Below are positions 2,826 through 64,000 of a stretch of 64,000 bases of DNA, one piece after another. Within the stretch, counting starts at the first letter, position 1. Each line of letters starts with the position of its first letter. Under the pieces are notes generated by a model, which saw only the letters and a list, made by a program, of their open reading frames with translations, searched no databases and was not told the origin of the DNA. The stretch is from NCBI GenBank assembly GCA_024137785.1, contig JAHRHZ010000078.1, positions 21,247,216-21,311,215 of the forward strand. Direction: 5' to 3'. A program made the translations under genes and the position numbers. Source of the stretch: Ginglymostoma cirratum. Taxonomy: Eukaryota.

Positions 2826-2891
2826 CTGTATTGCTTAAGATGTTGCTTTCCTTTTGTGAAGGAGTTTCAAAGTTAACTAGGTCAGTCTCTC

Positions 2892-3045
2892 AGAGATAGT
2901 AGGAACTGCTGATGCTGGAGAATCTGAGATAACAAGGTGTAGAGCTGGATGAACACAGCAGGCCAAGCAGCATCAGAGGAGCAGGAAGGCTGACGTTTCG
3001 GTCCTAGACCCTTCTTCAGAAATGCTCTACACCTTGTTATCTCAG
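2892..3045 (-). mobile_element. Solo Penelope-like terminal repeat (pLTR) with a hammerhead-like core
   Basis: Near-identical to the termini of the PLE at 47239-48495. Minus strand reads CTGAAGAAGGGTCTAGGACCGAAACGTC. Ends in a short inverted piece. Confidence 0.8.
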
Positions 3046-27119: not shown

Positions 27120-28024
27120 GTACAGTTTGATGTTCAAAAACTATAAGAATATTTTTATTGACAGTTGTGCGAAGTGTGTGAACACTGGATACAATATAAC
27201 TGCAGAAACTGATCAGATTAGGGGATTGCTTTTTAAAAAATGAAACAAAACAGAAATGGAAACAGATTTTTTAAAAGAAATAAAATATCCTATCAATTGT
27301 CGCAATGCCTACGGAGTTTACAAAAAAAAATAAGAATTTACGGAAAAAAAATCACGACGACCAGGAATTTGTCTGTAGATCTCTGCACGGGAAAGCGGGC
27401 AGCTACAAAAAAAAAGGAAAAGTCCAAAATGTAGTTTATTGCTCTTTGGAACTCCACTAGTGAGGAATACTTACTTTGCAATTTGTATGAGGAAGCTACA
27501 GCTGCAGATGCTGGAGTCAGAGATAACACAGTGTGGAGCTGGAGGAACACAGCAGGACAGGCAGCATCATAGGAGCAGGAATGTTGAAGTCTTGGGTCGG
27601 GACCCTTCTTCAGAAATGGGTTTATATTTGTAATTTGCATGATTGCTTTATACAGGACAGAGTAATAGATTTCGGACGCAGTACCTTCTCATTGTGAGCA
27701 GTAGTGAGCTCCTCACTGATTTCAGATATGCACCAAACCTCCAAAATAAACACAGAGAATACTGGACAACGTCAGTGGGTCTGGCAGCATCTGTAGAGAG
27801 AGAAGCGGAGCTAACGTTTCCAGACTGGTACAACTCTGGTCATACCTCCAGAAGCTGGTTTTGCCCTGCAGGATGAGGTCATGTCTTGCAGACGGCGTTT
27901 GCAAAACCTAAACCTCTATCATCGACAGTCTCTGGGTTAAAATCTTAAAAGTTAAGCTCCAGCAGCCAGTATAACTATTTAGAAATATTCAAAGATTGTT
28001 CACGTGAGTCTGACATGGGTGGTG

Positions 28025-29335
28025 GGCGAGTTGTTAGAGGGAATCCTGAGGGACAGAATTTACATGAATTTGGAAAGGCAAGGACTGTTTAAGGAAAGTC
28101 AACATGGCTTTGTGCGTGGTAAATAGTGTCTCACTAACTTGATTGAGTTGTTTACTGAAGTAATGAAGAGAACTGATGAGGACAGAGCAGTGGACATGAT
28201 TTATATAGACTTTAGTAAGGTGTTTGACAAGGTTCCTCATGGTACACTGGCTGGCAAGGTTACAGCACATGGAATACAAGGACAACTAGCCATTTGGATA
28301 TAGGACTAGCTTGAAGGTAAAAGATAGAGGCTGGTGGTGGAGGCTTGCTTTTCAGACTGGAGACCTGTGACCAGATATGTGCCACAATGATTGGTGCTGG
28401 GTCCACTGTGTTTTAACATTTATGTAAATGATTTGGATATGAACATAAGAGGTGTGATTAGAATGTTTGCAAATGTCATAAAAATTGGAGGTGTAGTGGA
28501 CAGTAAAGAAGGTTATCTCACAGTACAATGGGATCTTGATCAGATAAATGTGAAGTGCTGCATTTTGAAAAGACAAATCAGGGCAGAACTTATACACTTA
28601 ATGGTAAGGTCCTGGGGAGTGTTGCTGAACAAAGAGACCTTGGAGTGCAGGTTCATAGTTGCTTGAAAATGGAGTCACAGGTAGATAGGATAGTGAAGAA
28701 AGTGTTTGGTATGCTTGCCTTTTTTCGTTCAGTGTAGCAGTTAGGAGGTCATGTTGCAGCTGTATAGGACATTGGTTAGGCCAGTTTTGGAATACTGCAT
28801 GCAATTCTGGTCTCCCTACTATAGGAAGGATGTTGTGAAACTTGAAAGGGTTCAGAAACGATTTGCAAGGATATCGCCAGGGTTGAGTGTTTGATCTGTG
28901 GGAGAGGCTAGATAGACTGGGGCTATTCTTCTCGGAGCGTCTGAGGCTCAGGCGTAACCTTATAGAAATTTATAAAATCATGAGGGGCATGGATAGGACA
29001 AATAGCCAAGGTCTTTTCCCTGGGATGGGGGACTCCAAAACTAGAGGGCATAGGCTTAAAGTGAGAGGAGAAAGATATAAATGGGACCTAAGGGGCAACT
29101 TTATCACACAGAGGTGGTTTGTGTATGGAAGAAGCTGCCGGAGGAAGTGGTGGAGGCTGATACAATAACAACATTTAAAAGACATCTGGATGGTTATATG
29201 AGTAGGAAGAGTTTAGAAGGATATGAACAAAATGCTGGCAAATGGGACTAGATTAATTTAGGATAATTGCTCGGCATGGGTGAGTTGGACTGAAGGAACT
29301 GTTTCCGTGCTGTACAACACTATGACTCTATAACT
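28025..29335 (+). mobile_element. 5'-truncated CR1 in intron 1 of paralog A
   Basis: RT motifs (DFSKxFDKVPH, VLGPLCF, EQRDLGVQVH) and tail tatgactctataactc; not seen at the equivalent site in paralog B. Confidence 0.9.
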
Positions 29336-30181: not shown

Positions 30182-30260
30182 ATGAGTCTGGAAATGGTTT
30201 CATGCCATACAATACGTCTTCTTCCTGTCATCTTCTACATCCTTCCATCATTGTCAGACG
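30182..30260 (+). CDS. B7-like paralog A, signal-peptide exon (MSLEMVSCHTIRLLPVIFYILPSLSD; the ATG at 30194 is the one conserved in B)
   Basis: Acceptor taacag| at 30176, donor |gtaagt at 30261, phase 1, hydrophobic leader. Confidence 0.85.
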
Positions 30261-30351
30261 GTAAGTTCTAAGATGCTTTTCAACAAATAGCTCTATAGAA
30301 TACTGATTCCCACTGAAGGAATGTGAGTCAATGAAAATTATTGTTTTTCAG

Positions 30352-30666
30352 GTTTTTTGGATTTATTTTGTAACTCTCCGGTGACAGGAATATTTAACAA
30401 AGACACTAAACTACTGTGCACAGTCACTTCACAAGAGGATTGGAACTTGACAGACATTGTACTATGGAAACAGAAAGATGTAGAAGTGTTTAACTACAAG
30501 AAAAGTGTCAATGAAGTTCAGGGTCGGATTAAATTACTTCATTCAGGATCTCAAGAGATATTACTGGTGATCCAGAACACACAGTTGTCAGATAGTGGGC
30601 AATATCAATATTATTTGCAGACAACTGTTGGTCACAAAAGTGCTGACATCAATTTGAAGGTTAAAG
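30352..30666 (+). CDS. B7-like paralog A, IgV exon
   Basis: 315 nt, phase 1-1, tttttcag|...|gttggt. V-set motifs: B-strand LLC, C-strand W, GRI, LVIQNTQLSDSGQY, G-strand LKVK. Confidence 0.9.
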
Positions 30667-31379
30667 GTTGGTGACTGTATTCTTTTCTTGATATTATAGA
30701 TGTTCGTTGCAAGTACTTCATAACAAATTCCAGTTTTGTTCTCATTTTAAAAGTGAATAGGTGCAGGAATAAATGATTCAGGCCATCAAGCCTACTCCAA
30801 TTTTCAGTGCGATGTTATTTGACCATGGGCTGCAGCTCCACTGCCTTGCTCGCTCCCTCAAAATCTGTCAGTCTTAAATGCATTCAACAATGGAGCATCC
30901 ACAACCCTCTGGGTTGAAGAAAGTTTACAAAGTTTACAACCCTGTGAATGAATCATTTTCTCCTCAAATCAACCTTAAATTAGTTTACCTGAAACTGTGC
31001 CACTATGTTTTACATTCCCTGACTGGCAGAAACAATCTCTCTACAGCTATCATGTAAAGCCCCTTCAGAATCTTGTATGTTTCAATGAGATCACCTCTCA
31101 CTCTTCTAAACCCCATTAATGAACAGTAATATAAGCCCAATTCACTCAATTTCTCATCATAGGACAGCCCCTCCCATTCCTGCAAATAATCTTGTGAATG
31201 TTCCGTCTAATGTAACCAATGCAAGTATGTCTTCTGGGGAAGAGAAATCCACACTCCAATGACCATTTGAGAGAAAAAAAATTCTCCTCATCTCTGTCTT
31301 AAAAGAGAGATCGCTTATTCTCAAACTACGGCAGAAACATCCTCTAGGAATCTAACCTTTTCAGTCCCTTTTAGATCTT

Positions 31380-32950
31380 CTGTGGGCAGAATTTCATAGG
31401 GGTCTGAACAACATGGGCTACAATGAGATGTGTGATATAATCAGGTCCATGTTGATGTCGGAAGCAACTTGTACCATCTTTGATGCTTTTCACAAGTGCC
31501 ATTTCGAGAATCTTATTTGGTAAAGATGAGTTGCCAATTGACATGTTAAATGCCCAATTAATGCCACAAATTGAATCATTAATATTCAGCCTCCCATCAT
31601 ACCAAACCCACAAATCAAGCTCGATGCCTGGAAAAATCAACAAGGAATCCCGAGCATCTGGTGGAGCAACTGGTGGAGCCAGTTGCCTGCTCTGAGTGGT
31701 CTCCATGTTAGAAACTGGGTGCCAATTTCTCAGGCATGCTCCATGGGGGCTGGGCACATGCAACTCACATCTGCAGACATTGGCAATTTTCACGTGCCAG
31801 CTTCTAAGAACCTTCATGGCCCATCTCCTGTGCACTAATAGGATGCTTCTACTATTCAGTGATGCAGCTTGGGTAACTTCAGTAGCTCTCATTGTAATGC
31901 TGCAACAGTGGCACTCTGCTCAGGGAAACACATCCAGCTCATGGCCTGGGCTAGGCTGCACCTCAGGCCTGTTTGCTTGCTGTCATTGCAATCATTGACT
32001 GAACCTACCTGGATGCTTATAACTTCCCAGCTTGCATTGCCTGATCTTCCTTGTTACATTTTGTCCCTTCAGCCAGAGAAACCAGGCTCACAGTATTGCA
32101 AACTTACCACATCTTTAGTACCAAGGAGCCAGGGAACTTGTTCTTGTCAGCAAGCCTCAGTCAAGTCAAGAAGGATAGCCTTGTTTCAGGTGTTCCCAGC
32201 ATTGTAAATCATGGACAGCCTCTGCTACTAGTCCAGACCCTGTTCAGGGCAGTCAGAATGAGATCGTCTCCTCATTAGTACACCGTCTGTCTTGATTCTT
32301 TCTTCCCTGCTGTGGGCTGTTTTCCTCATGGAATGAGAGGGAGGCAGATATTAAGGGAGATGAATGTGGGTGGTGCAGTTAATACTGTTGATGAAAGTGG
32401 GTAGGTGGCCCATGTAAGTGAGTCAGCAGCACACCAAGCACACTGGCTTAGTGATGTCAGGGCTTGGGGTTGGGGAAGGTGAGTGGGCAAGATGTTGCAG
32501 ATTGTGAGAGTGGGGCTAGAGCATGAGCTGTAGTGGTGATGGGTGAATGGTTGGTGGGAGAGGTGGAGGTAGAGTAGCAGAGATACAGTGAATGTGAGAT
32601 ATTGGAGACATGTTAGTGGCCTTTCTGCTGGCGGAGTGGAGAGGAACATTAACCATCTTCTTACACTGCTGGACCTTCCACGAGGCTGCTGAGATTGCTT
32701 TAACAAGAACAGCAATCTTCAACCAGGCTGGCACAATCAGGGGTCACAGGCTCCACAGCTGGTCATCGAGGAACAAGAAGTCCCAGCAGTGCACCACCCC
32801 ATCCAGCAGGAGCTCCTGGACACTCTCCAAAAAAGAGGCCAATGATTACTGTCTATTTGAAAACTCCAAGGTAAATGTCAGGAACCATGCAGGGTAGCTC
32901 CAGACTGATAGTGCTTATCTGAATGCACAATGGGCTTTTAAAGATTGCAT
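31380..32950 (-). mobile_element. Degenerate Harbinger-type element (Myb/SANT ORF remnant) in the V-C intron of paralog A
   Basis: Minus strand ELLLDGV...WLKIAVLVKAIS...QQCKKMVN resembles 38543-38821; absent from the 0.8-kb intron of paralog B. Confidence 0.5.
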
Positions 32951-33019
32951 TGGTGCAAGGGATGTTGGTGAATTCCGGGATATCCAGTGAATGGCAAGTT
33001 GTTCCGGGAAAAGTATATT

Positions 33020-34375
33020 TTACAATGGGGCAGGAAATTAATCAACCAACATTTGGATAGTCATGGTCTGATTAGCAATAGTCAGCGTGGATTTGTGTGC
33101 AGAAAGTTGTGTCTGACAAATCTTTTAGAGTTTTTCGAAGAGGTAACCAAGAGGATAGATGAGGGTAGGGCAGTGGATGTTGTCTATATGGACTTTAGTA
33201 AGGCCTTTGACAAGGTTCTGCATGGCAGGCTGGTCATGAAAGTTAGGTCGCATAGGATCCAGGGAAAGCTAGCTAATTGGATTCAAAATTGGCTCTATAT
33301 TAGGAAGCAGAGGGTGATAGTTGAAGGTTGTTTCTTGGATCGGAGGCCTGTGACTAGTGGTGTGCCATAGGGGTAGGTGCTGGGATCTTTGTTATGTGTT
33401 ATTGACATAAATGATCTGGATATGAATGTACAAGGCATGATAAGTAAGTTTGTGAATGATACAAAATTAGAAGGTATCGTTGATAGCAAAGAAGGTTATC
33501 AAAATTACAGAGGGCTCTTAATCAGATGGGGAAGTGAGCTGAGGATTGGGAAATGCAGTTCAATACAGATAAGCGTGAGGTGTTGTACTTTAGAAAGTCA
33601 AACCAAGGTAGGACTTATACAGTGATGATAAGGTCCTGAGGAGTGTTTTGGAACAGAGGGACCTAGGAGTTCAAGTACATAGTTTGCTGAAAGTGGTGTC
33701 ATATGTGGACAGGATGGTAAAGAAGGCATTTAGCATGCAGGTCTTCATCGGTCGAGGCACTGAGTACAGGAGTTGGGACGCTGTGTTACAGTTGTATAAG
33801 TCATTGGCGAGGCCACACTTGGAGTATTGTGTACAGTTTTGGTCACCCTGTTATAGAAAAGACATAGTTAAACTGGAAAGTGTGCAAAGAAGATTTACGA
33901 GGATTGTAGTCCTACAAGGACTAGTAGATCTGAGTTATTGGGAGAAGTTGGCCAGGATAGGACTTTATTCCTTGGAACATAGGAGAATGAGGGGTGACCT
34001 TATTGAGGTGTATAAAATCATGAGGGGTAGTGATAGGATGAATTCATATAGCCTTTTTCCCAGGAATAATGAATTGAAAACTAGACAGTATAGGTTTACG
34101 GTGAGAGAGGATAGAGGATAGGACCTGAGGGGCAACTTCTTCATGTAGAGAGTGTTGAATATATGGAATGGGCTGCCAGAGAAACTGGTTGAGGCAGGTA
34201 CAATAGCAACATTTAAAAAAAAACATTTGAATAGGTACATGGATGAGAAGGGTTTAGAGGGATATTGACCAAATGTGGGCAATTGGAACTAGCTGAGTGA
34301 GCACTATGGTCAGCATGGACTAGTTTGGGCCAAAGGGCTGTTTCCATGCTGTATTACTCCATGACTCAATGACTT
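33020..34375 (+). mobile_element. 5'-truncated CR1 in the V-C intron of paralog A
   Basis: CLTNLLEFFEEVT, YMDFSKAFDKV, RPHLEYCVQFWSP, tail atgactcaatgact. Confidence 0.92.
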
Positions 34376-34872
34376 GATGAATGTTTGTGATGCCACAGAA
34401 GCAGGATACCTAATTAATGTGATGAGTTTACTAAGATACTGCAAGGAAACCTATTAGTCTTATGGTGAGAAATCCTCCAAAAAATTTGACATATCCCAAA
34501 GTTAACCAAAAAAAGGATTCAGTCCTATGTTTCAACAGGATAACCTCTCACTTCTCTAAACAGCAATGGATTTATGTCCAACCAGTTCAAACTTGCTTCA
34601 CAAAATAAGCCCTTTACTTCAAGAATGAATGATAATCACTCTTCCAACAACATAATTTTGCTGCTAAACTGTGCCAGGAAACAACTGACTAGACAAATGG
34701 TGATAGTGGCATAGTGACCATGTTTATTGGATGAGAATTCCAAGAGACCCATGTTAACCTCAGTGATTATGGGTGAAAATCCCACTCTAACAACTGGTAG
34801 AATTTAACTTCATTTTCTAAATCTGAATTATGAAGCTCATTCCACTAATAATAATGCAATCATCATTTTTAG

Positions 34873-35157
34873 CTCCATACAACATGATTGTTTTCCCAAA
34901 CATCGTATCGTCGAGAATAGTCAGTGTCACTTGTGAAGCAACTGGATATCCACCGGGTCGGATGCACTGGTTCTTGAACACAAAAACGAACCTCACATCC
35001 AATGCTAATATTAGTATTGAAGAAACACCACAGGGACTGTACAAGATCAGCAGCACACTTCAAACCGAGGAAGAAATAGAAACCCCAGAAGGTGTTTATA
35101 CTTGTGCCATGTGGAGCATAGATGACAGTAAATATGAGGTGAAGAGAAATATTTCAT
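34873..35157 (+). CDS. B7-like paralog A, IgC exon
   Basis: 285 nt, phase 1-1, tttttag|...|gtaagt. APYN...VTCEATGYP...HW...GLYKISSTL...YTC. The V-C junction LKVK|APY is typical of the B7 family. Confidence 0.9.
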
Positions 35158-35691
35158 GTAAGTTCACCACATTTATGCTTGAAAGGATTTTGGAAAGTAC
35201 ATATTTAAAGAATTAATATGTTTCATTTATTTGCAAATATGGATCATATTGCAAAATCATACTTATTACTCAAGACTATTTTACGCTGAGAACTTGTGGA
35301 ACATTATTTTTAAATTATTGCAGTCCTTTTCCTCACTGTTGTTTAAAGGTCAACTTTGTTATTGTAATGAACAGAGTCGTAGTTGGGTATATCTATGCCC
35401 AGCCCAATCAGAATCTACGTGGCTGGGCTGAGAATTAAGATTGATCATTAATTATTCATGCTGTAGCGCCAGGTTAGCTACGACCCAAATAATCAGCACC
35501 GTCTTCTCATTCTATACAAAATGTATAAAATGAGGTTTTATTGTACTTTACAAATCTGTTTATTGCAACCTAGTTCTAAGGAGTACAAGATGAAAAACTA
35601 CAACTCTTAGTCTCATCTTAGCAATATTGTAGTTCTATTCTACCAAGCATTTAATTAATTAAATATTTCTCACTCACGTTTTCTGTTGCAG

Positions 35692-35835
35692 TCTCTCATT
35701 CAAATTCTACCTCTGCTGAGAGTTCTGGAAAGGAAAGGAAAAATGCTTTCGTAATTGTCCCTGTGATTACAGCATTACTTCTTGTTGCATTAGTAATCTC
35801 TGCTGTTCTGCAATTTAGGAAAAGATCGCATGCAG
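35692..35835 (+). CDS. B7-like paralog A, stalk + transmembrane exon
   Basis: 144 nt, ttgcag|...|gtatga. SHSNSTSAESSGKERKN-AFVIVPVITALLLVALVISAVLQF-RKRSHA. Confidence 0.88.
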
Positions 35836-42440: not shown

Positions 42441-43431
42441 ATCAAGTTGAATTGAACTATTAATCACAGAAAACTGTTTAAAATCAGTGGAGGCTATTTA
42501 AATACATGCAGGAAATCACAGATGGATGGGAATTATTATGTGACTAAGTCAACGGAAGACAGCTTGGAAATACACTAGCCAACAACTAACAGTTGATCAT
42601 GCACCCTGCAAATGAAAGAAATATTCAATAATGATTGTGCATGAGGATACTTCCAGAGCAACCAAAGTATAAGGTGAATCCAAAGGAGTGATGTCATTAG
42701 TAGTATAATCACTGAGAAGAGATGTCCCACTAGAAGCTCGGAGGTAGTAGGAACTGCCAATGCTGGAGTCAGAGACAACACAGTGTGGAACTGGAGGAAC
42801 ACAGCAGGCCAGGCAGCATCAGAGGAGCAGGAAAGCTGACATTTCGGGTTGGGACCCCTCTTCAGAAGAATGTTCCTCCAGCTCCATACCGTGTTATGTC
42901 CCACTAGAAGCTGCTTGATCTTGATCAGATCAGGTCTAATTGGTCTGTGGTAAACATAGTCTGACCATCTCGTGTTGCTATATGTTTTTGTTTGAGTACA
43001 CACAAATCAATTGTTTCATTTTCTTCCAATCGCCTTACTATAATAAAAATTGCTTGACTTACAACGTATTTTGTCAGTTAGAATTCTCGATCTCAGCAAC
43101 CTTACAGAGAGCAGCTCAATAAATCTGAATTGTTGTTGTGGATGTGCTCTTCCAGAGCAGAAAAAGCCATATGGTGTTGAGACTGCTGCTGCTCCAGACT
43201 TCTCTCTTATCCTCTCTTCCAGTGAAAAATTTTAGCCATGTGGGAAGATTTGATAAAATGACACTGTTTTGTTTGGGACAGCAAAGGATGAATAAAGATT
43301 TAATTAAAGTGTATGAAATTATGTGGAGTCAAGATAAACTGCAAAGCAAGGATCTATTTCACTTAGTGGTGATGCCAATAATTCAGGACATAGGTTCCAC
43401 GTAACGTACAGAAAGATTAACTTGTAACAAA

Positions 43432-46248: not shown

Positions 46249-47238
46249 ACTAAAGCGGAGTTGATGGGAATTTATCTTTGCCCAGACAATGCTGAAAGTC
46301 TGGAATTTGCTGCCAGCAAAGATAATAGAGGCAGAACCCTCAGAATATTAAAGCAATGCTTGGGATATGTGTTTGAAATGTGATAACCGATAAGATTACA
46401 GACCAACAGTTAGATAGTGAACCTAGACTGTGTAAAATCACTATTATAGTGTAAAATCACCATTATAGGCATGCTGGGCTGACTGGTTTTCTGTGCAGTC
46501 AATTTTCTGTGCTCTCCTACTGGTCTATTCAAGGTCTTTCCAATTGAGACCTGACAATTACTGCCTCCCTTAAGTCCATTTCCACTTAAATCCTGACAGG
46601 CATGCTTCCCTCCGATTTCCTTTTTCACTAGCATTGTAAATAAATACCTCTTTTTAGCAATCAGATATTTGAGTTTTAGTTCTGCCACTGCTACCTTCTC
46701 TGCTTTGCTAGGCAAACCACTATCAACACTTCAATTCTCAAATTATTCATCCCCGCCCCACTCCGTGCTCTCTAACTGTCCATCAATTCCATCTTCTTAT
46801 TCTGTCAAGCTCCTCGAATGCCATCATCAGCCTCGGGTCTGTGGCTGTTAATTCTATAACTCTTTGTTTGAATTATTTCATCCTACCCTAGTGAAAAAAA
46901 AACAGACTTCCCCAAAGTCTTGGAGAACATTCTCTGTCACTGTTAGTGACTGTGGTACATTATTCCTCCATCTGTGTCTATGGGATGAACCTGACTTGTT
47001 TAAACTCAGCTACTTTCATTCATAGAATCACAGGATCGATATAGTTCAGCACAGTTCTGTCCAGCTGCATCTCTGAAGAAGGATCAGACCAGTGTTTTCT
47101 TTTTCTTTATTCATTCACAAGATGAGGGCGTCGCTAACTGGGCAGCATTTATTGCCTGTCCCTAATTGCCAAGAGTCAACCACATTGCTGTGGATCTGGA
47201 GTCACATGTAGGGCAGACCAGGTAAGGATGGCAGTTTC

Positions 47239-48495
47239 AGAGATAGTAGGAGCTGCAGCTGCTGGAGAATCTGAGATAACAAGGTGTAGAGCTGGATGAA
47301 CACAGCAGGCCAAGCAGCATCAGAGGAGCAGGAAAGCTGACGTTTCGGGCCTAGACCCTTCTTCAGGAAGGGGGAGGGGAAGGGGGCCACCCAAAGGTTG
47401 CAGGAACAGCACCTCATATTCCTCATATCCCTCACACCCCGGTCCCGCAATAATAACCAAAAAAGACTCCCCCTCATCCTCACGTACCACCCCACCAACC
47501 TCCGGATCCAACGCATCATCCTCCGACACTTCCGCCATCTGCAATCCGACCCCACCACCAAAGACATTTTTCCCTCCCCACCCTTATCTGCTTTCTGGAG
47601 GGACCACTCCCTCCACGACTCCCTTGTCCGCTCCACACTCCCCTCCAGCCCCACCACACCCGGCACTTTTCCCTGCAACCGCAGGAGGTGCTACACCTGC
47701 CCCCAACACCTCCTCCCTCACCCCAATCCCAGGTCCCAAGAAGACATTTCACATCAGGCAGATGTTCACCTGCACATCTGCCAATGTGGTATACTGCATC
47801 CGCTGTACCCGTTGTGGCTTCCTCCACATCGGGGAAACCAAGCGGAGGCTTGGGGATCGCTTTGCAGAACACCTGCACTCAGTTCGCAACAAACAACTGC
47901 ACCTCCCAGTCGCGAACCATTTCAACTCCCCCTCCCATTCCTCAGATGACATGTCCATCCTGGGCCTCCTGCAATGCCACAGTGATGCCACCCGAAGATT
48001 GCAGGAACAGCAAATCATATTCAGCCTGGGAACGCTGCAGCCCAATGGTATCAATGTGGATTTCACAAGCTTCAAAATCTCCCCTCCCCCAACTGCATCC
48101 CAAAACCAGCCCAGCTCATCTCCGCCTCCCGAACCTGTCCTTCCTCTCACCTATCCCCTCCTCCCACCTCAAGCCTCAGCCCCATCTCCTACCTACTAGC
48201 CTCATCCCTCCCCTTGACCTGTCTGTCCTCCCTGGACTGACCTATCCCCTCCCTAACTCCCCACCTATGCTCACCTTTACTGGCTCCATCCCACCTCTTT
48301 GACCTGTCTGTCTCCTCTCTATCTATCTTCTCCTCTATCCATCTTCTATCCACCTCCCCCTCTCTCCCTATTTATTTCAGAAACCCCTTCCCCTCCCCCA
48401 TTTCTGAAGAAGGGTCTAGGCCCAAAACGTCAGCTTTCCTGCTCCTCTGATGTTGCTTTGCCGGCTCTGTTCATCCAGCTCTACACCTTGTTATC
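47239..48495 (+). mobile_element. 5'-truncated Penelope-like element (GIY-YIG end + pLTR, with inverted pLTR at the 5' end)
   Basis: NVVYCIRCTRCGFLHIGETKRRLGDRFAEH (GIY-YIG). Perfect 15-bp TSD AAGGATGGCAGTTTC at 47224-47238 and 48496-48510. Confidence 0.93.
47339..47366 (-). ncRNA. Minimal type I hammerhead ribozyme motif in pLTR
   Basis: Minus strand CUGAAGA-A-GGGU(CUAG)GCCC-GAAAC-GUC: intact core, helix II and palindromic ACGU helix III. Confidence 0.7.
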
Positions 48496-54680: not shown

Positions 54681-55263
54681 TGGTTATTGGGTTTGGACAT
54701 CCCAGCCAGGATATGGAAACAAGATGTCCAATCCAGGATCAGACCATCCTCAGGTCCAAGATAGGGCAACCCCAGGCTCTGAGTCACTGCTGCAATCTTG
54801 TCACGACTCCGTCTAACCTAAAGCCAAACCTGTCGAATAGGGACTGCAGGAAAGGGTGGGAAAGGGTCCTGGCAACAAGACTGCCACTGTGGATTCAAAC
54901 TATCATTCAGCACATATGGAAATCTTCAATCCAAGCCGAGCACTGCCCATGCCTGTCAAGACTGCAGGCTTGGTAACATTGTGGTGTCCTTTGCTATACT
55001 GCTTGCTTAGTCATATATTCCAGAATTCTAGCTGTGAGAATGGTAGGCATCTACTGTAAATACACGTGGAACTTTTACACTAATGTGATAATTATAAGCA
55101 TTCAAACCAGTTCTAGCGATGAAAATATACCTGAAGGATTGCTTTTTAGAGCAGCGTTTTATTGATAATAAACATATCAGTAAAGTGAAACTAGGTTTGG
55201 TGAGATTAGTGAAACTTAACATGCTTTCTGTATTATCTCAAAACAGGTGAATTGAGTCTGGAA

Positions 55264-55330
55264 ATGGTTTCATATCGTACGATAAGTCTCCTCCCTGCCA
55301 TCTTATGCATCTTTCTGTCATTTGCACAGT
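55264..55330 (+). CDS. B7-like paralog B, signal-peptide exon (MVSYRTISLLPAILCIFLSFAQ)
   Basis: Acceptor aaacag| at 55246, donor |gtaagt at 55331; 91-nt intron, as in A. Confidence 0.85.
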
Positions 55331-55421
55331 GTAAGTTCTGGAATGCTTGTCAATATACAGTTCCATTGAACACTGATTCTCACTGCACTCATGACAGTTA
55401 ATGAAAGTTATTGTTTTCCAG

Positions 55422-55748
55422 GTTTCTTCAGACTAAATTGTCAGTCTTCAGTCACAGGAATATTAAACAAAGAAACTAAACTACCATGTATGTTAACTTC
55501 AGAAACGAGGATCAGTTCAATACACATTGAACTTTGTAAGAAGGAAAAAGATGGAAAAGTAGAAATTGTGTTTACCTCCAGGAAAAGCGTTAATAGAGCT
55601 CAGGGTCGGATTAAATTAGCTCACCCGAGATCTCAAGACATGTCACTGGTAATCCAGAACACACAGTTGTCAGATATTGGGACATACCAATATTCTTTGG
55701 AAACAGATATTGGTCGCAACATTAGTGAGATTACATTGCAGGTTAAAG
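55422..55748 (+). CDS. B7-like paralog B, IgV exon
   Basis: 327 nt, phase 1-1, ttttccag|...|gtgagt; ~54% aa identical to the V domain of A by manual alignment. Confidence 0.88.
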
Positions 55749-56557
55749 GTGAGTGACTGTTCGAATCCTGATATTCCTAATTGTAGAACGTTGGCTGCAA
55801 GTAGTTGGTAATGATTTTTAGTTTTGTTCTCATCCTTAAAAGTGAAATAGGGGCAGAAGTAGATCATGTGGCCTATCAAGCTTTCTCTGCCATTCAGTAT
55901 GAATGTGTTTGATCTTGGGTTTCCCTGCTCATTCCCTAGAGCATCGGTCAGTCTTACATGTATTCAACAATGGAGCATCACAATTCTCTGGGATGAAGAA
56001 GGCTTATAAAAGTTTACAACCCTGTGAATGAAGTAATATCAGCCTAAATCAATTTACCTGAGACTGTGCCTCTGTGTTTTAGATTCCCTGACTAGCAGAA
56101 ACAATCTCTTCACAGCTATTCTATAAAGCGCCTTCATAATCTTGTATGTTTCAATGAGATCACCTCTCACTCTTCTGAACCCCAGAGAATATAAGCTCAA
56201 AGCGCCCAGCTTCTCAGCATAGGACAAGACTCTCATTCCAGGACTGAATCTTGTGAACATTCACTCTACGGTGACCAATGCAAGTCAATCTTTCCTTAAA
56301 TATGGAGGCTAAAACTGCATACTGTACTGTTGATGTTATCTCACAAAAAAACTGTATAACTTAAGCAAAACTTCTTCATTCTTGTACTTCAATCCCCTTG
56401 CAATAAATAGAATGCCCTTTGACATTCTAATTGCTTGCTAAGCATACTAACCTTTTGTGTTACTTGTTTCAGTCCAATTGAAAGTCCCATTTCAAAGACA
56501 ACATGAAATATGAAGCTTGTTTCATTTCACTAATAATATTGCAATCACCCTTTTTAG

Positions 56558-56901
56558 CTCTATACAACGTGACTATATTCCCAAACATTGTATCAACGAA
56601 AATGTTAAGTGTCACTTGTGAAGCAATTGGATATCCACTGGCTCAGATTCACTCGCTCTTGAATGGAACAAAGAAGTTTACATCCGAGGCTAATACTAGG
56701 AGTATAAAATCAGCAGAGGGACTGTATAAGATCATCAGCACATATCAAATCAAAGAGAAAATAGATGTCTCAGAAAGTAGTTATACATGTGCCGTGTGGA
56801 GCATGGAAGAGGGTCTATATATGGTGCAGAAACGTCTTTCACATAAGTTCACAATGCTTATTCTTCAAAGGAGTTTGGAAAGCAAATGCTTAAAGAATTA
56901 A
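56558..56901 (+). CDS. B7-like paralog B, IgC exon with read-through tail (donor lost at 56843); predicted secreted 245-aa product or incipient pseudogene
   Basis: Acceptor tttttag|; VTCEAIGYP, GLYKIIS, YTC. At the position of A's |gtaagttcac it reads |ataagttcac. Frame open to TAA 56899-56901. Confidence 0.75.
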
Positions 56902-57112
56902 CATGTTTCATTTATTCTCAATATGTGCACAATATTGTAAGATTATATTCAACGTTTGTGACTATTTGCACTGAAATGTTTCTGGGGATCTTATTTTTAA
57001 AACATGGCAGCCCTTTTCCTCACAGAATTGTTTAAAAGTCATAGTTGGGTACAGTTATTCCCAGACCACTCAAAATCGACATGGCTGGTCTGAGAATTAA
57101 GATTGACTGTTA

Positions 57113-57737
57113 CAGCAAGAACTGCAGATGGAGTCAGAGATAACANNNNNNNNNNNNNNNNNNNNNNNNNNNNNNNNNNNNNNNNNNNNNNNNNNNNNNN
57201 NNNNNNNNNNNNNNNNNNNNNNNNNNNNNNNNNNNNNNNNNNNNNNNNNNNNNNNNNNNNNNNNNNNNNNNNNNNNNNNNNNNNNNNNNNNNNNNNNNNN
57301 NNNNNNNNNNNNNNNNNNNNNNNNNNNNNNNNNNNNNNNNNNNNNNNNNNNNNNNNNNNNNNNNNNNNNNNNNNNNNNNNNNNNNNNNNNNNNNNNNNNN
57401 NNNNNNNNNNNNNNNNNNNNNNNNNNNNNNNNNNNNNNNNNNNNNNNNNNNNNNNNNNNNNNNNNNNNNNNNNNNNNNNNNNNNNNNNNNNNNNNNNNNN
57501 NNNNNNNNNNNNNNNNNNNNNNNNNNNNNNNNNNNNNNNNNNNNNAGAGATAACACAGTGTGGAGCTGGAGGAACACAGCAGGCCAGGCAGCCTCAGAGG
57601 AGCAGGAAAGCTGCTGTTTCGGGTCAGGACCCTTCATCAGAAAAGACTTCTGACGAAGGGTCCTGACCTGAAACATCCTCTTTCCTGTTCCTCTTATGCT
57701 GCCTGGCCTGCTGTGTTCCTCCAGCTCCACACTTTAT
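57113..57737. mobile_element. Inverted pair of pLTRs (PLE-derived palindrome) spanning the assembly gap
   Basis: 16-bp TSD TTAAGATTGACTGTTA at 57097-57112 and 57738-57753; ~90-nt inverted arms centred near 57645. Confidence 0.8.
57146..57545. other. Assembly gap (400 N)
   Basis: Run of n. Confidence 1.
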
Positions 57738-57979
57738 TTAAGATTGACTGTTAACTGTTACTGCTGCAGTTCCAGGTCAATTATGGCCCAAACACTGAGC
57801 ACCCGCTTCTCATTCTGTATAAAATGGGGTCTCATTTTACAGGTCTGTTTTTTGCATCCTAGTTCTAATGGTACAAGATGAAGTGCTTCAACATTTAGTC
57901 TGCCTTAGCAATGTTTTAATTTCCGTACTATCAAGCATTTAATTAATTAAAAATTTCTCACCCACATTGTGTGTTTCAG

Positions 57980-58123
57980 CCCTTCATCAAAGCTCCAACC
58001 CTGATGGCAGTATCAAAGAGGAAAAGAAAAATATTCTCGTAATAGTCTTCTTGATTATTACATTTCTTTTTACTGCATTAATAATCTCTGCTGTTCTGCA
58101 AGTTAGGAAAATATCATATACAG
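57980..58123 (+). CDS. B7-like paralog B, stalk + transmembrane exon
   Basis: 144 nt, tttcag|...|gtattt. LHQSSNPDGSIKEEKKN-ILVIVFLIITFLFTALIISAVLQV-RKISYT. Confidence 0.8.
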
Positions 58124-59414
58124 GTATTTTGATCATTATGGTTATTATGTAATTATGATTATCATATTAATTATGACATCATCTTATGTCTTGAAACACT
58201 TTTTATTATCCTTATTTTGAATATGCTTGTAATCTGGAAACCGGTGCAGTTTAACCCCATTATATGCCAAATATACAACTTTCAAGACTCAATAAAAAGA
58301 ATTGACAGAATCTCCAACATCTGAACATTTTCACATTCAGTCATTCCAATTTCCTAGCTAACATTGTATGTTTTACATAAGCCCTGTGTTGAAATATTGG
58401 GGGGAAAAAGTACATTTAAATCACTGAATGAGAAGCATTTGCTGAATAGTTGCCAGAGGGAAATTTAGAGGTACCTTACGTTATGAATGTTGCCTAATTA
58501 GTTAGAATCTTTTCTCAAAGAAAGAATGGATAACATATACATAAAAGCTATAAGTATTGACTTGTCCTGAGCTCCCACAAAGAAGAGATAGAAATGTTTA
58601 GGTGAGTCAGACCGAACTGCTGTGGAGACATTCCATTCAGTCATTTCCATTGAACATCACATCACGGATTTGACATTCAGTCACCCTTTGATGTTCCAAG
58701 ATATAAATTTCAGACATATGATGTTTCGGATAGGTCAAGGAAAATAGAGAAGGAAGTAAACATTTTTCTTTTAAAATCCTCAATTGTTTCATAATTCATA
58801 ATTGTAGTTTAATACCTGTGACTGATTTGCTAGGCTGACCCAGAGGACGATTCAGAGTCAACTAATTGGTGCGTTCCTTGAATTATATATAGGACCATAA
58901 CTTTCCTCCCCAAAAATACAAGTTCAGCATTTAGTACAGTGATCTAAAATTACCAAAGCCTATCCATCACCTATGCTGGTACTAGCCCCTTGAGGAAAAT
59001 CTAATATCAAATTCTCTCACAGTGGGTTTTTTGAACTTCTGAAAAACCAGTCCAGATGTAAAGCAATTTGGTAACATAAACATTATGATACTGGAGCTTC
59101 CTAGTTACGTTAGACAATTGCAACTTTATAGATTGACTGATTGCAATTATTTTGGATCCATTTGGTTATAAAAATATTTTTATTGTTAGACAAAAGAGCA
59201 GGGTAAATTATCTGAATGTCAATTCAGTAAAATATGATATTTTTATACCAGTTAATGTTTTTGTGTTCATTCAGAGATTACTGCCTTTTCTGCAATTGAG
59301 TTTGGAGCTACAAGAATGGACACAATGCAAATTTTTGCAGTAGGTTGTGTTAATTCAAATGAAATGTTATATGCCAGAAACAATGAATTTATTATTACAT
59401 TGCTTTACTTTCAG

Positions 59415-59443
59415 AAGTTGGAAGAGAAGTCAAAATCCCATTG
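59415..59443 (+). CDS. B7-like paralog B, cytoplasmic mini-exon (EVGREVKIPL)
   Basis: tttcag|29 nt|gtaagt. Confidence 0.75.
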
Positions 59444-59519
59444 GTAAGTGTGATTTCAAATATCTGCAAACTTTTGAAAGCCTGGTCTCAATCTTTTAAA
59501 AGTTTTCTTCTTTTAATAG

Positions 59520-59558
59520 GTATCAGGTGACCACAGGACTAATGTTAACAAAATATAG
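59520..59558 (+). CDS. B7-like paralog B, last coding exon (VSGDHRTNVNKI*)
   Basis: Acceptor ttttcttcttttaatag|; aligns codon for codon with 36876-36905 in A; the last 3 aa come from an inserted repeat. Confidence 0.65.
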   Translation, partial: VSGDHRTNVNKI

Positions 59559-60277
59559 GACTATGGATGCTGGAAATCTGAAACCGAAGCAGAAATTGCT
59601 GGAGAATTTCAATGTGTCTGGAGAGAAAGCAGATGAACGCTTTGAGTCTAATGAGTCTAATAAACCTTCTTCAGAACTTAAGACCAATGTTTAGTAATGA
59701 TTGCAGTGAATAAATCTTATTTTTAACTTATAAACAATATCCTGTTTACAACAGGTTGCGACATCCTGTATCAACTATGTCCTATCATGTGAATGATTGA
59801 AGCTGAAGTTAGAACACATGGGTTATTTCACACATTGTTACTTCCTGTATAGTGATTACTGCAAATATTTTTAACAGTTCTCATCCAGCATAATACACTT
59901 CACTAACTGACGGAATTGGGCTGAACTCTTCACTATTCTTTATAGAGAAAAGAAATAATGTCACATATTAGTTGTCTGTGAACACCATTGGTCAAACATT
60001 GCATTCACGCACCAATACCTACATGCTAAACACCTTGACCTTCTATCCAGGCTCCTGCTGCCAAGAAGATCTCTGTTACTCTGAAAATATATCTGTGGAT
60101 TGATCACAGAAATATTGTGCAAAATTTTATCAATTGGACACTTTTTTCATTTGATTAATAGAATAGAATAGCTTTTATTGTCATGTGCAATTGAATGAGT
60201 GCAGTGAGAAATTTGAAATGTCACTGCTTTTGTACAATTTTAGGTACCGGGTAACTAGGTATAAATACTTTAAAAGA

Positions 60278-60450
60278 AGAGATAACAAGGTGTGGAGCTG
60301 GATGAACACAGCTGGCCGAGCAGGAAGGCTGACATTTCGGGCCTAGACACTTCTTCAGAAATCTAGGCCGAGGCCCGAAACGTCAGCCTTCCTGCTCCTC
60401 TGATGCTGCTTGGCCTGCCGTGTTCATCCAGCTCGACACCTCGTTATCTC
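60278..60450. mobile_element. Inverted pLTR pair (PLE-derived palindrome)
   Basis: gagataacaaggtgt...acacctcgttatctc; arms match the PLE termini. Confidence 0.8.
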
Positions 60451-62032: not shown

Positions 62033-64000
62033 AGGACACCACCCCAAGGCCTCCTACCCTCCCTCGACCTCTTCATCTCCAACTGCCGTCGAGACATCAA
62101 TCGCCTCAACCTCTCTACCCCTCTCAAACACTCCAACCTCTCCCCTGCAGAACGTGCAGCCCTCCGCTCCCTCCGCTCCAATCCCAACCTCACCATAAAA
62201 CCCGCGGACAAGGGAGGGGTAGTCGTAGTATGGCGCACTGACCTCTACATTGCTGAGGCAAGGTGCCAAATCTCTGATACCTCCTCCTACCGCCCCCTGG
62301 ATCATGACCCCACCCCCGAGCACCAAACCATCATCCAAACCATCCACAACCTCATCACCTCAGGTGACCTCCCACCCACCGCCTCCAACCTCATCGTTCC
62401 CCAACCCCGCACCGCCAGCTTCCATCTCCTTCCCAAAATCCACAAATCTGAATGCCCTGGTCGACCCATTGTCTCAGCCTGCTCCTGCCCCACCGAACTC
62501 ATCTCCACCTACCTAAGACTCCATTTTCACCCCCTTGGTCCAGGAACTCCCTACCTACGTCCGTGACACCATCCACGCCCTCCACCTCCTCCAGAACTTC
62601 CAATTCCCCGGTTCCCAACACCTCATTTTTACTATGGACATCCAGTCCCTATACACCTGTATTCCCCATGCAGATGGCCTAAGGGCCCTCCGCTTCTTCC
62701 TGTCCCGCAGAGCTGACCAATCCCCCTCCACCGACACCCTCATCCGCTTAGCCAAACTCGTCCTCACCCTCAACAACTTCTCTTTCAATTCCTCCCACTT
62801 CCTACAGACAAAGGGGGTGGCCATGGGTACCCGCATGGGCCCAAGCTATGCCTGCCTCTTTGTAAGTTACGTGGAACAATCCCTCTTCCATACCTACACT
62901 GGCCCTAAACCCCACCTCTTCCTCCGTTACATTGATGACTGTATTGGCGCCGCCTCGTGCTCCCACGAGGAGCTTGAACAGTTCATCCACTTCACCAACA
63001 CCTTCCACCCCAACCTGAAGTTCACCTGGACCATCTCCAACACTTCTCTCTCCTTCCTGGACCTCTCTGTCTCCATCTCGGGTAACCACCTAGAAACTGA
63101 TGTCCATTTCAAGCCCACTGACTCCCACAGCTGCCTGGAATACACCTCTTCCCACCCACCTTCCTGCAAAAATGCCATCCCCTGTTCCCAATTCCTTCAC
63201 CTCCACCGCATCTGCTCCCAGGATGAGACATTCCACTCCCATACATCTCAGATGTCCTCATTCTTCAAGGACTGCAACTTCCCCCCCACAGTGGTCGAGA
63301 ACGCCCTCAACGATATCTCCCGCATTTCCCGCAACTCATCCCTCACACCCCGTCCCCGCAATAATAACCAAAAAAGAATCCCCCTCGTCCTCATGTACCA
63401 CCCCACCAACCTCCGGATCCAACGCATCATCCTCCGACACTTCCGCCATCTGCAATCCGACCCCACCACCAAAGACATTTTTCCCTCCCCACCCTTATCT
63501 GCTTTCCGGAGGGACCACTCCCTCCGCGACTCCCTTGTCCGCTCCACACTCCCCTCCAGCCCCACCACACCCGGCACTTTTCCCTGCAAGTGCATGAAGT
63601 GCTACACCTGCCCCCACACCTCCTCCCTCACCCCAATCCCAGGCCCCAAGAAGACTTTTCACATCAGGCAGATGTTCACCTGCACATCTGCCAATGTGGT
63701 ATACTGCATCCGCTGTACCCGTTGTGGCTTTCTCTACATCGGGGAAACCAAGTGGAGGCTTGGGGATCGCTTTGCAGAACACCTGCTCTCAGTTCGCAAC
63801 AAACAACTGCACCTCCCAGTCGCGAACCATTTCAACTCCCCCTCCCATTCCTCAGACATCATGTCCATCCTGGGCCTCCTGCAATGCCACAGTGAGGCCA
63901 CCCGAAGGCTGCAGGAACAGCAAATCATATTCAGCCTGGGAACCCTGCAGTCCAATGGTATCAATGTGGATTTCACAAGCTTCAAAATTTCCCCTCCCCC
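62033..64000 (+). mobile_element. Penelope-like element, RT + GIY-YIG endonuclease (frameshifted, runs off the window)
   Basis: IKPADKGG, LPKIHK, PGRPIVS, MDIQSLYT, GVAMGT, RYIDD, then VVYCIRC...YIGET; the 3' part is highly similar to 47430-48090. Confidence 0.95.

Follow-up and report, generated by a model that had tools for sequence, protein, structure and literature searches.

In the genome of Ginglymostoma cirratum, one gene of a tandem pair of B7-like genes has lost the 5' splice site of its IgC exon, and the main product of this gene is most probably a membrane protein in which a single IgV domain is followed directly by the stalk and transmembrane (TM) segment. The pair lies in a window of 64,000 nucleotides, meaning the whole stretch of DNA that was analysed, and the two genes are referred to as A and B. 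A single base change at a donor might have turned a V-C-TM B7-like gene into a gene for a V-only membrane protein. At internal vertebrate exons, G-to-A mutations at donor position +1 usually lead to exon skipping, as expected under exon definition. The G-to-A change at +1 of the IgC 5' splice site of B would have switched the IgC exon off. With the donor gone, the exon would no longer be defined, and the V donor (GT at 55749) would be joined to the stalk/TM acceptor (AG at 57979). All coding exons are of phase 1-1 and the frame would therefore be preserved after skipping. The mRNA would encode a 201-aa type I membrane protein with a tail carrying the conserved C-terminal motif of the family, and the IgC exon, no longer used yet with its frame still open, would persist as a relic in a 2.2-kb intron. 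We infer that the skipping results from the donor change. The IgV domain of B7 proteins carries the receptor-binding face in solved complexes. The V-only protein of B may be functional, for instance as a shorter ligand still presenting its IgV face.

The window contains a unit of ~13.5 kb duplicated in tandem (copy A at ~24.1-37.3 kb, copy B at ~46.6-60.1 kb), and the copies are colinear over eleven blocks of 70-80% identity. Each copy has leader, IgV, IgC and stalk/TM exons, all of phase 1, and the DNA of both genes follows the B7 gene plan, in which leader, IgV, IgC, TM and tail are encoded by separate exons of phase 1 (Table 1). The leader is conserved between A and B. The V-to-C intron measures 4.2 kb in A versus 0.8 kb in B. 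Many indels separate the copies in the intron flanking the IgC exon, with zero indels in the exon itself. Two LINE-type reverse-transcriptase-like open frames (28068-29335 and 33051-34374) were placed within the V-to-C intron of A. Transcripts of B were assessed over 55150-59700 in Logan contigs of runs from three studies (X1, 2022; X2, 2023; X5, 2020) and in raw poly(A) RNA-seq reads of a further run (X13) over the same interval.

Table 1. Exons and splice features of genes B and A, in positions of the window; a slash marks an exon boundary, and X1 and X5 are RNA runs.
Feature	Position	Strand	Remarks
B exon 1 (5' UTR and leader)	55201..55330	+	ATG at 55264; 22 codons plus 1 base; donor AGT/GTAAGT
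B IgV exon	55422..55748	+	phase 1-1; present in mRNA; 108 residues
B IgC exon	56558..56842	+	frame open, acceptor intact; left out of assembled mRNA
B mutated 5' splice site	56843..56844	+	AT in place of GT
B read-through frame	56842..56901	+	19 codons plus TAA; A counterpart of equal length at 35157-35216
B stalk/TM exon	57980..58123	+	phase 1-1; joined straight to V exon
B cytoplasmic mini-exon (29 nt)	59415..59443	+	second acceptor 3 nt 3', used in X5
B last exon	59520..59727	+	CDS end with stop at 59556-59558; 3' UTR with AATAAA at 59659 and 59709; the 3' bound is the reach of the X1 contig, 27 nt beyond 59700, and not a mapped 3' end
Paralog A	30194..35835	+	leader 30194-30260, V 30352-30666, C 34873-35157, TM exon 35692-35835

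The sequences flanking the A and B donors align gap-free. The IgC exon of A ends in ATTTCAT/GTAAGTTCAC, with G at 35158 and an intact GTAAGT donor, and that of B in CTTTCAC/ATAAGTTCAC, with A at 56843 and T at 56844. The donor context is CAT/GTAAGT in A versus CAC/ATAAGT in B. The first-pass annotation of this DNA, made from the letters alone, had claimed such a GT-to-AT loss in B, and the claim is correct to the base. It had also called for a check of the base at 56843 in reads, and an X1 contig at 56774-57138 spans the site with 0 differing letters. Since this contig covers the site without difference, the assembly is not alone in having A at 56843; X1 is the only run spanning the base and may derive from the assembled individual. 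An assembly error or a rare allele, in a gene that normally includes the C exon, would be compatible with cover by one run besides the assembly that may stem from the same animal. Such a reading is extremely improbable though, given that the X1 contig agrees with the assembly, skipping occurs in runs of three studies (2020, 2022 and 2023) and no C-to-TM joint is among the joints listed. A lone substitution between paralogs that are ~75-80% alike would in itself not be improbable. The weight of the B substitution comes from its position at donor +1 and from the RNA result.

No GT in the IgC exon of B or in 56843-57145 exceeds 5 of the 9 donor consensus positions, and the use of a cryptic replacement donor was rejected on this basis. 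A reading as an AT-AC (U12) donor was rejected as well, since the site is ATAAGT and not ATATCC, and the downstream acceptor AG pairs with the GT donor of the V exon. The IgC domain of B has also changed in its coding sequence. Ser (TCG, IHSLLN) stands in place of the invariant Ig Trp, and this W37S change is found in B only among 29 sequences. Further departures at columns conserved to at least 90% are L45F and L67Y. The X2 contig over the IgC exon (depth 4.5) has an extra A behind 56669 (AAA to AAAA), which, if real, may represent a frameshift allele of the skipped exon; a sequencing or assembly error is possible.

Assembled transcripts of B consistently leave out the IgC exon. The best-covered contigs are 838 nt long in X1 (word depth 65.5) and 690 nt long in X2 (12.5), and X5 has two shorter ones (6.2 and 4.8). 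The joint of exon 1 to the V exon (55330>55422) is found in contigs of X1, X2 and X5 and in four raw X13 reads, with the X1 contig beginning 130 nt 5' of the V exon. The V exon is joined to the stalk/TM exon at 55748>57980, with GT..AG borders and 2231 nt skipped, in X1, X2 and X5. The TM exon continues into the mini-exon at 58123>59415 in X1 and X2, with the acceptor at 59418 in X5, and the joint of mini-exon to last exon (59443>59520) is listed for X1, X2 and X5. The mRNA has five exons and four canonical junctions. Translation by script gives an open V-TM frame of 201 aa, or 200 aa with the alternative acceptor. The encoded protein begins with a signal peptide and a single IgV domain, which an 18-residue stalk links to a TM helix with a short tail behind it. 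A membrane form free of IgC, with V joined in frame to TM, is hence present in the RNA of all three runs with contigs, and an ectodomain of IgV plus IgC is not encoded by the assembled mRNA. In-frame skipping of the C exon to a V-TM protein of ~201 aa had been named in the first-pass annotation as an alternative to its favoured model, and it is this form that appears, at 201 aa, in three runs from three studies. The TM and cytoplasmic exons downstream, described there as intact, are both spliced into the assembled mRNA. The acceptor of the mini-exon is of the NAGNAG type, used at 59415 in X1 and X2 and at 59418 in X5, which accounts for the products of 201 or 200 aa.

RNA from the IgC exon of B is seen only in genome-colinear contigs of low depth. 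These are 56448-56792 (depth 4.7) and 56774-57138 (depth 5.6) in X1, and 56460-56740 (depth 4.5) in X2. They extend 98-110 nt into the 5' intron, and in X1 also 296 nt beyond the dead donor. The contigs were taken as unspliced because they are colinear with the upstream intron across the acceptor. In X1 they are as deep as contigs within the TM-to-mini-exon intron (3.2-8.5), consistent with precursor RNA that has not been spliced. In X2 the IgC contig reaches 4.5 against 12.5 for the mRNA, yet another intron has no coverage. The X2 depth is above what simple pre-mRNA predicts. The left ends of the IgC contigs (56448 in X1, 56460 in X2) were considered as a transcript start or as a cryptic acceptor (cag at 56470-56472), and these options were set aside. 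A likelier cause of these ends is a repeat (~56062-56447) at whose border assembly graphs break.

Neither a V-to-C joint (55748>56558) nor a C-to-TM joint is among the joints listed for the B interval in the four runs. Assembled contigs drop rare isoforms and carry neither strand nor quantity, and a minor isoform could exist. Apart from the four reads on the leader-V joint, X13 has 0 reads on the TM exon, and its coverage is too thin for junction counts. The first mates of X13 lie on the minus strand, as expected of a plus-strand gene in a stranded library. Counted against the skipping account are the restriction of its RNA evidence to contigs, the X2 depth, the intact C exon, the cover of 56843 by a single run, and the high dN/dS between A and B.

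The first-pass annotation had favoured B as a constitutive secreted decoy made by read-through from the IgC exon. This is not supported, as the assembled mRNA from three studies joins V straight to TM. The structural parts of the proposal hold. The IgC frame continues as HKFTMLILQRSLESKCLKN to the TAA at 56899-56901, and leader, V, C and tail sum to the proposed 245 aa with no TM. The statement that no obvious AATAAA lies between the stop and the assembly gap also proved right, with 0 of 12 common poly(A) hexamers in 56843-57145, the 303 nt up to the N gap at 57146-57545. The human precedent is as had been stated: secreted PD-L1 (secPD-L1) reads into intron 4, ends in an 18-aa tail, requires Cys239 for dimers, uses a poly(A) site of its own and was detected at both the mRNA and the protein level (Mahoney et al. 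2018, PMC6426808). B resembles secPD-L1 in a frame that stays open beyond the IgC exon as it enters the intron, and in a short tail that includes one Cys. It differs from secPD-L1 in that the listed joints include none from V to C, no poly(A) signal precedes the gap and read-through RNA that is spliced was not found. An isoform of this type, with V spliced to C, read-through into the intron and its own poly(A) site, does not appear among the joints listed.

The tail frame itself is not particular to B. The intronic frame of A at 35157-35216 has the same length of 19 codons and the same TAA, and its first codon is Cys (TGT). Because A carries a frame of equal length at the same TAA, the 19-codon frame of B was inherited. 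The sharing of this frame was weighed as a sign that a soluble isoform is old, and was discarded as weak evidence, because a 19-codon open run arises with a chance of ~0.4 and the flanking intron is conserved like the exon.

A soluble leader-V-C protein, made from B by IgC read-through with a 19-residue tail containing one Cys, is unlikely either as the main or as a regulated minor product. The open frame to the TAA, the low-depth contigs over 56448-57138 in X1 and 56460-56740 in X2, the intact and unaccelerated C exon, relatives with predicted TM-less isoforms (P0148, P0132, P0161 and P0005) and the reality of the human precedent would all accommodate such a product. However, no run lists a V-to-C joint, the C-exon contigs are unspliced with 98-110 nt of upstream intron and in X1 no deeper than another intron, the 303 nt before the gap hold no poly(A) hexamer, the invariant Trp of the IgC domain is gone, the abundant contig is V-TM in all three studies, and the frame was inherited rather than built for B. 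A related option is that the IgC exon is still used in a minor or tissue-restricted leader-V-C read-through mRNA beside the V-TM form, which would explain why it is intact and unaccelerated; this too is improbable. If true, one gene would, with no C-to-TM splicing at all, supply both a short ligand in the membrane and a soluble form with a Cys tail, a germline-fixed shark counterpart of human secPD-L1. Among the predicted TM-less isoforms, which come from Hemiscyllium, Chiloscyllium and Heterodontus, P0132 and P0161 skip the TM exon in frame, and P0148 ('HLPF-stop') and P0005 ('HFPM-stop') are V-C forms ending right after the IgC domain. Soluble forms may be common in this shark and ray family by routes other than read-through. 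For B, the lost donor should not be taken as read-through because exon skipping is the vertebrate default, and the case calls for caution in inferring read-through from a lost donor.

Comparison with other sharks places the donor loss of B as a derived state. In a tree of IgC domains, B groups with B-type genes of Chiloscyllium plagiosum and Hemiscyllium ocellatum (support 99/96), A groups with A-type genes of Rhincodon and Stegostoma (99/97), and these two clades are sister groups (99/95). A is 84-87% identical to the whale shark and zebra shark proteins of the A type. By accession order, C. plagiosum has three neighbouring genes, namely a third gene, A and B. The IgC tree and the tail sequence identify the C. 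plagiosum models XP_043570551-555 and the H. ocellatum model XP_060700521 as orthologues of B, the tail motif EIPMVSSDHRINV of these hemiscylliid proteins being retained in B as KIPLVSGDHRTNV. They share with B the leader, the V features (Y-x-Y and two N-terminal Cys) and the exon phases. They differ from B in including an IgC domain with Trp, in having a predicted isoform X5 (P0148) with V-C and no TM, and in that none is V-TM. In hemiscylliid sharks the B proteins have the V-C-TM plan with the Ig Trp retained (IHWLLNG), where B of the window reads IHSLLNG. The losses of donor and Trp are derived in the lineage of B, because the hemiscylliid orthologues are V-C-TM with Trp.

The C-exon branch of B (0.17) compares with 0.15-0.18 for the functional hemiscylliid orthologues. 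A long decay of the exon is disfavoured because the C exon is free of stops and indels and its branch is no longer than those of the orthologues. On the simplest reading, the donor loss in B looks recent, although continued minor use of the C exon may be the alternative. B would represent an immune-ligand domain loss caught soon after the event, with the discarded exon still readable. Single IgV domains followed by TM also occur in P0020 (Amblyraja isoform X2, 196 aa) and P0060 (Cetorhinus isoform X2, 193 aa), which belong to the same family by profile. Both are distant paralogues of B (E values of 5e-12 and 8e-6) and are predicted isoforms.

Whether B as a whole is decaying bears on the meaning of the V-TM mRNA, which could be transcribed from a failing gene and have no function. 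The dN/dS between A and B is 0.82 for V and 1.86 for C (the latter from only 9.5 synonymous differences), near or above 1, no B-type protein of Rhincodon or Stegostoma turned up in protein searches, and the poly(A) coverage in X13 is very low. But B retains five exons with four canonical junctions and an open 201-aa frame, its V domain keeps the hallmark residues with just 2 mild departures at conserved columns, the V model reaches a pLDDT of 90.4, the C-terminal motif is conserved, and word depth rises to 65 in X1. Immune ligands often show high dN/dS, and the A-B value was measured between old paralogs and says little about the own branch of B. General decay of B is therefore a rather remote prospect.

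The two genes belong to a B7-like family by profile searches, which bears out the first-pass claim of two tandem B7-like paralogs. A profile of 15 shark and ray relatives matches the ectodomains of CD276 (2.6e-36), PD-L1 (3.1e-19), PD-L2 (5.2e-16), BTN1A1 (3.8e-13) and CD80 (4.4e-10) in the PDB, and the family is termed B7-like because of these matches. The C exon of B alone finds PD-L2 (4.6e-5) and also PD-L1 in the PDB. A profile of the two V exons retrieves PD-L-like proteins of sharks and rays (best 4e-42), and exons of the window also match shark and ray relatives by tblastn. These relatives carry the NCBI names PD-L1-like, PD-L2-like, CD276-like and butyrophilin-like. A word search with the V-exon frame of B gave no match, the full-length relatives lying beyond its length range.

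The IgV domain of the family is non-canonical. The canonical B-F disulfide is absent, with the F-strand Cys replaced by Tyr in A, in B and in all 27 aligned relatives; instead, every one of the 29 aligned sequences has two Cys located in strands A and B. The combination of Y-x-Y without the F-strand Cys and two N-terminal Cys is a trait of the shark and ray family and not specific to this locus. The model of the B V exon shows a V-set fold over 108 residues, and a fold search with it returned generic V-set neighbours only, naming no specific partner. An assignment of A and B as the PD-L1 orthologue of cartilaginous fish was rejected. The shark PD-L1 of Kondo et al. 2025 (PMC12151841, supplement file 2), compared as fragments, has a leader (MKIISLVLI...) and an IgV (LTVTAPRLSYTASYGNITMECRFP...) unlike those of A and B. 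By sequence, A and B appear not to be PD-L1 orthologues but to constitute a B7-like lineage of their own whose IgV is non-canonical, and shark 'PD-L-like' tandem genes are here documented as such a lineage.

The closest human parallel to the V-TM form of B is isoform II of PD-L2, in which exon 3 is skipped (He et al. 2004, via PMC6803534). As far as the isoform is described in that source, both forms have IgV joined to TM, an absent IgC-like domain, a preserved frame and a shorter membrane-bound ectodomain. In the same description the human form is optional, with intact splice sites, whereas in B the donor is destroyed and skipping would be the default. The shark gene is not an orthologue of PD-L2. 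The mechanism behind the skipping in B is ordinary and already known, the shark B7-like family concerned has been little studied, and the case is a modest one. B might offer an experiment of nature on the role that the membrane-proximal IgC plays in B7-type ligands, for instance in spacing or in cis interactions.

Repeats are found at several places in the window. A short interspersed repeat beside the N gap (57546-57738) recurs at 2890-3022, 27500-27620, 42738-42867, 47237-47369 and 60278-60450. It reaches a word depth of ~1e5 in RNA contigs and is the source of many spurious joints. A retroelement-like pair at 47427-48090 and 63338-64000, with an ORF at 47300-48196, combines a Pro/Ser-rich frame with a Cys/His-rich block. 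Its two copies are 95.9% alike, and this high similarity suggests recent activity.
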